DNA from: Dimorphilus gyrociliatus
Lineage: Eukaryota > Animalia > Annelida
Direction: 5' to 3'
NCBI GenBank assembly: GCA_904063045.1
Contig: CAJFCJ010000002.1
Coordinates: 2,224,161-2,288,160 of the forward strand
DNA length: 64,000 bases
The notes under the pieces were generated by a model, which was given only the letters and a program-made list of their open reading frames with translations, was not told the origin of the DNA and ran no database searches. Shown here in pieces: positions 3,219-5,144 of the stretch (positions are counted from its first letter, which is position 1; each line of letters opens with the position of its first letter). The translations under genes were made by a program, and so were the position numbers.

Positions 3219-5144
3219 ATGTCTTCAAATATCAAGTTTAATTTAATTGTAGCAATGTGTAATAATCGTGGTATTGGTTATAACGGAAAATTGCCTTGGC
3301 CTATACTGAGGTAAGTTAAAATAACTATGTTGTCTAGATATCTTGGTTTATAATTTTTGTTTCTAATCAGGAAAGATATGGCATTTTTGGCTAAAGTATC
3401 AACAGAAACCAAAGATCAGAGTAAGAAGCTGAAATATTTAAATTATTAATTAATATTATTAAATGTCTCATTCCTAAAAGATAAAAGGAATGCAGTTGTA
3501 ATGGGAAGAAAAACTTGGCTCTCAATTCCAGAAAAGAGGAGACCATTGAAGGATCGTATTAATATAATTATCTCAACGACTATCAAGTAAATCCTATGCA
3601 ATTTTTGATAAATCAAATCATTTATACACTTAATTAGGAATTTAACAGATCCGAATACCTATGTGGTTAATAGTTTTGAAGATAGTATAAAACTGATAAA
3701 GAAGAAGCAATCAGAAATTGAAGGCATTTACGTATTTGGAGGATCGTCTGTTTACGAAGTTAATAGAACTTTTTTATCTAATTTAATTCCATTACTATTT
3801 CAATGTTAACCCTCATATTTTCTAATATAAACTCTCTTTTTATTAATTTATACAGAAAGCTTTGAATAGTAATTACGCTTGCCGGGTTTACTTGACTAAA
3901 GTCTATGCTGATTTTGAATGCGATACGTTTCTACCTGAATTTGAAAGTAGCAAAGAGTAAGCTAATGTCTTATGTTATTAATTCAATATTTTTTGCTACT
4001 AATTTCTTCCTTGGTTCTTTTTAGTTTCATTTATCATCAATTAGAGTAAGTCAATAGACCGTTACTTTGCTAAAGTTACATTCACAACCAATAGCAAAAT
4101 CGTTATCTCTTTAGGAACACGTCTTTCAACACAGGCGTTCAAACTGACAACAATATTGAACATCAACTTTTTATCTACGAAAAGGTTAATTATCTTAAAT
4201 AAATTAATTATTAAGAAATAATAAAAAAGTTAAGGAGCGTCTTATTTTTAGAATACATCTTATTTTAGTCCAATCGTTGCTTTCCTTGACAAAACTAGAG
4301 GTTTTGCTAAGAGTGGCAAGTTACCTTGGCCCTATTTGGAGTAAATATTAAAAACTAGCTTTTTACCATTTTAATATATTTATATATATTTACTTCAATT
4401 AGGAAAGATTATAAATTTTATACAAGTTTAATTGGCAGTGTCCAAGAATCGGGTAAATTGTAATAAACTTGTAATTGCATTAATACTTTACATATTCTTT
4501 CTAATTCTAAAGGTTACAAAAACGTGGTTATAAAGGGTAGAGTTACATATGAATCAGCGAAAGAAGAAGGAAAGAAAGCTAATGTTCATACAATAGTTAT
4601 TTCATCAAAATTAAAGTATATATATATATATGTATACTATATCAAGATTAAGTTTAAATAATTAATGTATAGACTATTTTTTATTGTAGCTATAAATCTG
4701 TATTGTTTAATAGGAAAACTACAGATGATGTATTAGCTGTTGTACCATCGTTTGGAGACGCCTTAAGGATAATCAGAGAAACCCCTCGTATTGAAAACGT
4801 ATACATTTTAGGTGGTTATGAAGTATACAAAGTATATATTCTTAACTTTATTCCTATGTATTTTGAACAATAATTTTAATGATTTTTCTTCCTATTACTG
4901 AAACAATCATAGACAGCTTTGGAACATCATCTGTGTGAAAAAGTCTACGTAACGAGGATATTTGCCAACTACGATTGCGATCGTTTTTTCCCGCTGATCG
5001 ATAATACATTTAAAATTGAAAGGTATGTTTCGCCTTCTTATTTAATCAATTTTTATTACTGTTTTTATTCTTTTTAGCCAACAGGATGAGACTGATAAAA
5101 ATTCTGGAATAGATTTTAAATTTGAATTATACGAAAGAATATAA
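3219..5144 (+). CDS. DHFR: Dihydrofolate reductase with two tandem DHFR domains (13 exons if fused; domain 1 alone would stop at 4202)
   Basis: Domain 1: [66 protein letters not shown]. Domain 2 (from 4252): [59 protein letters not shown]. The two are linked by a phase-0 intron at 4185-4251. Confidence 0.88.

Follow-up and report, generated by a model that had tools for sequence, protein, structure and literature searches.

Dihydrofolate reductase (DHFR) is among the most studied of enzymes, serving both as a drug target and as a model in work on catalysis, on dynamics and on protein evolution. To our knowledge it occurs in two forms, one with a single domain and one in which it is joined to thymidylate synthase (TS). 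The single-domain form is that of the monofunctional animal enzymes (EC 1.5.1.3, PF00186), such as those of chicken and human. The bifunctional DHFR-TS of protists and plants is a two-domain folate-cycle protein with the DHFR at its N-terminus and a long junction region between the two domains. Chains in which two DHFR folds are joined by a very short linker have been engineered in the laboratory, in connection with bis-methotrexate and protein nanorings; the nanoring constructs consist of two identical E. coli domains, and such tandems can fold. A DHFR fold without the catalytic residues is found in the US2 protein of herpes simplex (PMC11599850). A full-text search of the literature for a natural DHFR-DHFR protein found none, the matches being engineered constructs, vector names and malaria 'double dhfr' mutants.

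The window considered here is a 64,000-nucleotide stretch of the genome of the annelid Dimorphilus gyrociliatus (GCA_904063045.1, contig CAJFCJ010000002.1, positions 2,224,161 to 2,288,160). Its forward strand carries at 3219-5144 a single 13-exon gene that specifies a protein of 365 amino acids with two DHFR-type domains. It is quite likely that this is indeed one gene for one two-domain polypeptide, in which a canonical DHFR is followed by a strongly diverged DHFR paralogue that arose by tandem duplication. The exon model was obtained by joining GT..AG-bounded exons from the sequence and was then fixed at 13 exons by a spliced contig from a public sequencing run. After splicing all 365 codons are open, with no internal stop in a frame check on the joined exons, and the introns are all of the GT..AG type. 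Domain 1 comprises residues 1-187 and domain 2 residues 188-365, a frame of 178 codons. In the alignment with E. coli FolA, no more than about three or four residues link the final strand of domain 1 to the strand that opens domain 2. The features of the gene are as follows, with the evidence for each in brackets.

3185-3218, forward strand: minimal 5' untranslated region (the spliced contig starts at 3185)
3219-3310, forward strand: exon 1, domain 1, with the ATG, beta-strand A and the LPWP motif (DHFR_1 positions 2-24; contig)
3371-3420, forward strand: exon 2, domain 1, with the catalytic Asp and helix B (domain alignment; contig; FolA alignment)
3481-3586, forward strand: exon 3, domain 1, with the GRKT NADPH motif and the RPLKDR folate-tail loop (Pfam, 30.6 bits; chicken DHFR match)
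3638-3758, forward strand: exon 4, domain 1, with the GG..VY motif (domain alignment; Pfam; contig)
3856-3956, forward strand: exon 5, domain 1, with the conserved Thr and D.F.P (domain alignment; Pfam; contig)
4025-4045, forward strand: 21-nt micro-exon, domain 1, a core beta-strand segment (contig joints 3956/4025 and 4045/4115)
4115-4184, forward strand: exon 6, the final exon of domain 1, ending ..FIYEK (domain alignment; contig; FolA alignment)
4185-4251, forward strand: inter-domain intron of 67 nt, GTTAAT..TTTTAG (contig; sequence scan)
4252-4340, forward strand: exon 7, the first of domain 2, without an ATG, LPWP motif retained (reading frame; domain alignment; contig)
4403-4452, forward strand: exon 8, domain 2, catalytic Asp retained (domain alignment; contig; FolA alignment)
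4513-4615, forward strand: exon 9, domain 2, GRVT retained, folate-tail loop remodelled and without the Arg (domain, Schistosoma and FolA alignments)
4714-4831, forward strand: exon 10, domain 2, GG..VY retained (domain alignment; Pfam; contig; solved-structure match)
4913-5022, forward strand: exon 11, domain 2, conserved Thr and D.F.P retained (domain alignment; Pfam; contig; solved-structure match)
5078-5144, forward strand: exon 12, the end of domain 2, with the stop codon TAA at 5142-5144 (domain alignment; the contig reaches 10 nt in)
5149-5154, forward strand: ATTAAA, the probable polyadenylation signal of the gene (sequence only)

The homology of the two halves is clear from their direct comparison, in which BLASTP aligns domain 1 with domain 2 at 34% identity over 166 residues (E 6e-33), and from the Pfam DHFR_1 profile (PF00186), which matches exons from both halves in colinear order. 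Both results bear out the initial recognition of two tandem DHFR domains in the sequence-only reading. Domain 1 exceeds the profile cut-off of 25 bits, with 30.6 bits for exon 3 alone and 33.5 bits for the genome-level match. Exon 3 is also around 84% identical, by our own count, to residues 46-77 of chicken DHFR (E 1.7e-12), and its RPLKDR loop corresponds to chicken residues 65-70. The exons of domain 2, when scored singly, fall below the cut-off, with 12.2 bits for exon 10 (DHFR_1 positions 73-102) and 16.7 bits for exon 11 (positions 107-133). The assignment of domain 2 to the DHFR family is founded on its similarity to domain 1 and on the best matches of exons 10 and 11 among solved structures, which are DHFRs; exons 7 and 9 gave only chance or marginal matches in the same comparison. 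An artefact of assembly was rejected, as the halves are only 34% identical.

The positions of the introns argue that a gene already containing introns was duplicated at the DNA level, as had been proposed. Introns 1-4 lie in the same alignment columns (31, 48, 83 and 123) and in the same phases (2, 1, 2 and 0) in both halves, and these four shared sites presumably also resemble those of the vertebrate DHFR gene. A fifth equivalent intron had been claimed as well, and this stands only roughly: there are six introns in domain 1, and the last two of them, at columns 158 and 165, flank the site of intron 5 of domain 2 at column 162; all three are in phase 2. The additional intron results from the 21-nt micro-exon at 4025-4045, which the original exon model had overlooked, so that the protein is of 365 residues rather than about 358. 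The micro-exon aligns with E. coli FolA around residues 133-139, within a core beta-strand, and for this reason is taken to be constitutive.

Domain 1 is 34.7% identical to domain 2 and 33.8% identical to E. coli FolA, so the two domains of the one chain are about as distant from each other as domain 1 is from a bacterial enzyme. Since this FolA-like distance is combined with animal-type introns that are common to both halves, it points to a domain 2 that evolved faster after the duplication and is not foreign. A foreign origin had been considered, as the best solved-structure matches of exons 10 and 11 are protist DHFR-TS proteins, and was rejected on the exact agreement of four introns with those of domain 1.

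The question of whether the two halves belong to a single gene centres on the 67-nt intron at 4185-4251. If this segment is read on without splicing past ..FIYEK, the sequence continues with GTTAAT and the frame closes as ..YEKVNYLK at an in-frame TAA (4200-4202). The same intron contains the hexamer AATAAA twice, at 4198-4203 and 4220-4225, and the TAG of its acceptor (4249-4251) is, as had been noted, in frame with exon 7. There is no ATG in any frame within 4185-4452 and domain 2 is devoid of methionine throughout, in agreement with the earlier observation that it has no start codon of its own. On this sequence evidence domain 2 cannot start by itself and can be made only within the fusion, through use of the phase-0 donor at 4185.

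Transcript data had been named beforehand as the place to look for the resulting 4184/4252 junction, and it is there, in frame, within a fully spliced contig. The only public run found to contain the locus is dated 2017 and has no recorded library type. Of the sampled words of the locus it contains about one third, a share that we estimate to be roughly that expected from exons alone. The run yields one contig at the locus, of 1075 nt, with zero differences from the window and a mean word depth of 335. This contig starts at 3185, takes in all the exons up to the first 10 nt of exon 12, and shows a GT..AG joint at every intron that could be listed, that at 4184/4252 included. An unspliced copy of the locus is absent from the contigs of the run, which therefore behaves as RNA. 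Being a single assembled contig from one run, it establishes the joints and not one full-length molecule or the minor isoforms. Two joints of domain 2 lie beside simple repeats (4368-4395 and 4604-4643) and were not listed directly, and the contig coordinates account for both exactly. The repeats themselves are AT/TA-rich and lie in two of the domain-2 introns.

A different account would have two neighbouring genes here, or a gene and its decaying copy, with the 4184/4252 joint coming from rare read-through and a one-domain protein ending ..YEKVNYLK as the main product. An in-frame stop and two polyadenylation-type hexamers do lie less than 40 nt from the donor, the donor itself (GTTAAT) is weak, and assembled contigs omit rare or alternative forms. 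Against this, the spliced contig is the sole one at the locus and is unbroken at 4184 at its mean word depth of 335, domain 2 has neither a start codon nor any methionine, and neither its frame nor any of its ten splice sites is broken despite a divergence of about 65% of residues. It is very improbable, then, that the joint is a by-product of read-through. A trans-spliced downstream gene of an operon was rejected, because domain 2 lacks an AUG and the contig connects its acceptor to exon 6. It is further opposed by the published account of D. gyrociliatus, in which spliced leaders and operons, and with them trans-splicing, are reported to be absent (PMC7854359).

The fusion reading leaves room for a second product. 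Retention of 4185-4251 together with polyadenylation within it would yield a normal one-domain DHFR that ends ..YEKVNYLK. No such isoform was seen among the assembled contigs of the run, which can drop minor forms, and a short isoform may coexist with the fusion, as an addition to it and not as a replacement. Splicing of the 67-nt intron might compete with polyadenylation at its internal AATAAA signals and in this way determine the ratio of one- to two-domain product.

It is likely, from its sequence, that the inter-domain intron is a relic of the 3' end of the first copy. In the proposed course of events all or most of an animal DHFR gene, introns included, would have undergone tandem duplication at the level of DNA. 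The stop codon that once ended copy 1, together with its polyadenylation signals, would now reside inside the 67-nt intron and be spliced out in frame, whilst the start of copy 2, whatever that was, would lie inside the same intron or have been lost to it. The locus would in this way be an example of two gene copies fused by the conversion of a stop codon and polyadenylation region to an intron. The length of the intron is close to the median intron size of the species, which is 66 bp (PMC7854359).

Within the 77.9-Mb genome of 349 contigs, a profile search combined with exon searches found this DHFR locus and no other. The published assembly is described as having about 350 scaffolds and a strong GC bias (PMC7854359). 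Thymidylate synthase (PF00303) is encoded by a separate multi-exon gene on the minus strand of contig C6 (4981632-4982790), and a TS domain is absent from the fusion polypeptide, whose gene ends at 5144. The first large exon of the TS gene lies within an open frame of 322 amino acids, of which only about 158 match the TS profile. With a sole DHFR in the genome and TS encoded elsewhere, we infer from sequence that domain 1 is a canonical DHFR that supplies the DHFR activity of the animal. In likeness to the monofunctional animal enzymes, domain 1 is a typical member of the family with its hallmarks present; the worm protein differs in adding a diverged DHFR-type domain at the C-terminus, in a genome without a single-domain DHFR gene. 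In contrast to DHFR-TS, with which it shares an N-terminal DHFR in a two-domain protein, its second domain is a DHFR paralogue and not TS, and three or four residues take the place of the long junction region. The engineered tandems are laboratory constructs with identical halves, whereas the worm fusion is natural and its halves are 34% identical.

Both spliced domains were aligned with E. coli FolA in order to compare their hallmark residues. The roles of these residues in DHFR, in the pterin pocket, in the NADPH site and in contacts with the p-aminobenzoyl-glutamate tail, are established enzymology, and R57, R52, L54 and I50 are the residues that hold the tail of the substrate. In E. coli numbering the comparison is as follows.

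I5, A7, W22, D27, T113 and Y100, pterin pocket and catalysis: retained in domain 1; retained in domain 2
G43, R44, T46, S63/S64, G95 and G96, NADPH site: retained in domain 1 (S64 as Thr); retained in domain 2
S49 and D122, other conserved positions: retained in domain 1; retained in domain 2
G15, loop above the active site: retained in domain 1; Ala in domain 2
I50 and L54, folate-tail contacts: retained in domain 1; Ala and Ala in domain 2
R52, folate-tail contact: retained in domain 1; Lys in domain 2
R57 (vertebrate R70), binding of the glutamate alpha-carboxylate: retained in domain 1; His in domain 2

Domain 1 thus has every hallmark that was checked, including the catalytic acid, R57, the G-R/K-x-T motif, the GG pair and the equivalents of Thr113 and Tyr100. 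Domain 2 retains the catalytic acid with T113, W22 and Y100, as well as the NADPH-binding motifs (G43-R44-x-T46, S63-S64 and G95-G96), and has lost the folate-tail contacts (I50A, R52K, L54A and R57H). The position of R57 is occupied by His in a gapped register and by Val in an ungapped one, with a guanidinium in neither, and the pairing of Arg with His recurs in a separate alignment to a solved Schistosoma DHFR. Positions 28 and 31 are both Tyr in domain 2. It is thus in the segment contacting the p-aminobenzoyl-glutamate tail that the losses are concentrated, and the residues for chemistry and for the cofactor survive. Herpes simplex US2 is comparable in that a retained fold has altered substrate-binding residues, but there the catalytic residues are gone, whereas in domain 2 of the worm protein the catalytic Asp and NADPH site persist and the loss is confined to the folate-tail contacts. 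When the coding sequence of domain 2 was shuffled, 0 of 20,000 versions stayed open, and its two other frames contain 11 and 20 stops.

The pattern of residue loss, the intact 178-codon frame and the splice sites that have survived the divergence together suggest that domain 2 has been under selection, as a ligand-binding domain that is probably still catalytic with a changed substrate preference. Domain 2 is probably a paralogue that binds NADPH and pterin and has either a different substrate or a regulatory function. It may well be, although we put this forward tentatively, an NADPH-dependent pterin reductase of altered preference, acting for example on unconjugated dihydropterins. A stronger version of this idea, which must be regarded as rather unlikely, is that domain 2 represents a new activity of the DHFR fold, a reductase that uses NADPH for tail-less pterins such as 7,8-dihydrobiopterin and is hard-wired to DHFR; were this true, an animal would possess a bifunctional pterin/folate reductase of a kind not known before.

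The main rival is a non-catalytic role. Mammalian hexokinase I has an inactive half and eukaryotic phosphofructokinase an allosteric half, and these duplicated enzymes with one degenerate half offer an analogy with domain 2, not a homology. Domain 2 would on these lines be catalytically dead and serve as a structural, regulatory or ligand-binding partner, for instance by stabilising domain 1 or by sensing NADPH or folate. Disappearance of the conserved Arg (E. coli R57) and of three adjoining folate-tail contacts accords with such a role, loss of R57 being equally expected of a dead domain, and so does the fast evolution after duplication that the FolA-like distance between the domains implies. 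The survival of the catalytic Asp, of the Thr that positions it, of Trp22 and Tyr100 and of both NADPH motifs would be unexpected if the chemistry were irrelevant, and a dead domain 2, whilst a serious contender, is somewhat doubtful. Less likely again is a plain doubling of DHFR activity, in which the two domains would be DHFRs of the ordinary kind and the only effect of the fusion would be two active sites per polypeptide. Catalytic and NADPH residues are indeed present in both halves, but domain 2 is without R57, R52, L54 and I50 and the DHFR_1 scores of its exons are far below those of domain 1, which makes this explanation improbable.

A natural, expressed DHFR-DHFR tandem would lend itself directly to the study of neofunctionalisation that follows an internal duplication, with a second half that would have retained the chemistry and the cofactor site and selectively lost the folate-tail contacts. 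Because it is the only DHFR of the animal, the fusion is no dispensable side copy. The gene is presumably already contained in the public annotation of the genome, and the novelty would lie in its recognition and characterisation. A search with exon 10 of domain 2 (39 amino acids) against 1.84 billion protein cluster representatives gave no match at E <=0.001, the gene itself included. Since even its own gene was missed, the cluster library seems to be without the fusion protein; a query of 39 residues reaches close relatives only (an estimated 55-60% identity or more), so that the result says little about other species.

The genes on either side of the locus give no functional hint for the DHFR fusion. 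Downstream, a gene on the forward strand at 5486-6215 begins around 340 bp past the DHFR stop codon, and Pfam matches none of its larger exon pieces. Upstream, a divergent gene on the reverse strand (204-2227) contains a DXD glycosyltransferase sugar-binding region (PF04488, E 2.3e-8) and is separated from the DHFR start by about 950 bp. The G+C content is 33% in the exons of the fusion gene and 21% in its introns, within a window that is, at about 30% overall, AT-rich eukaryotic DNA.
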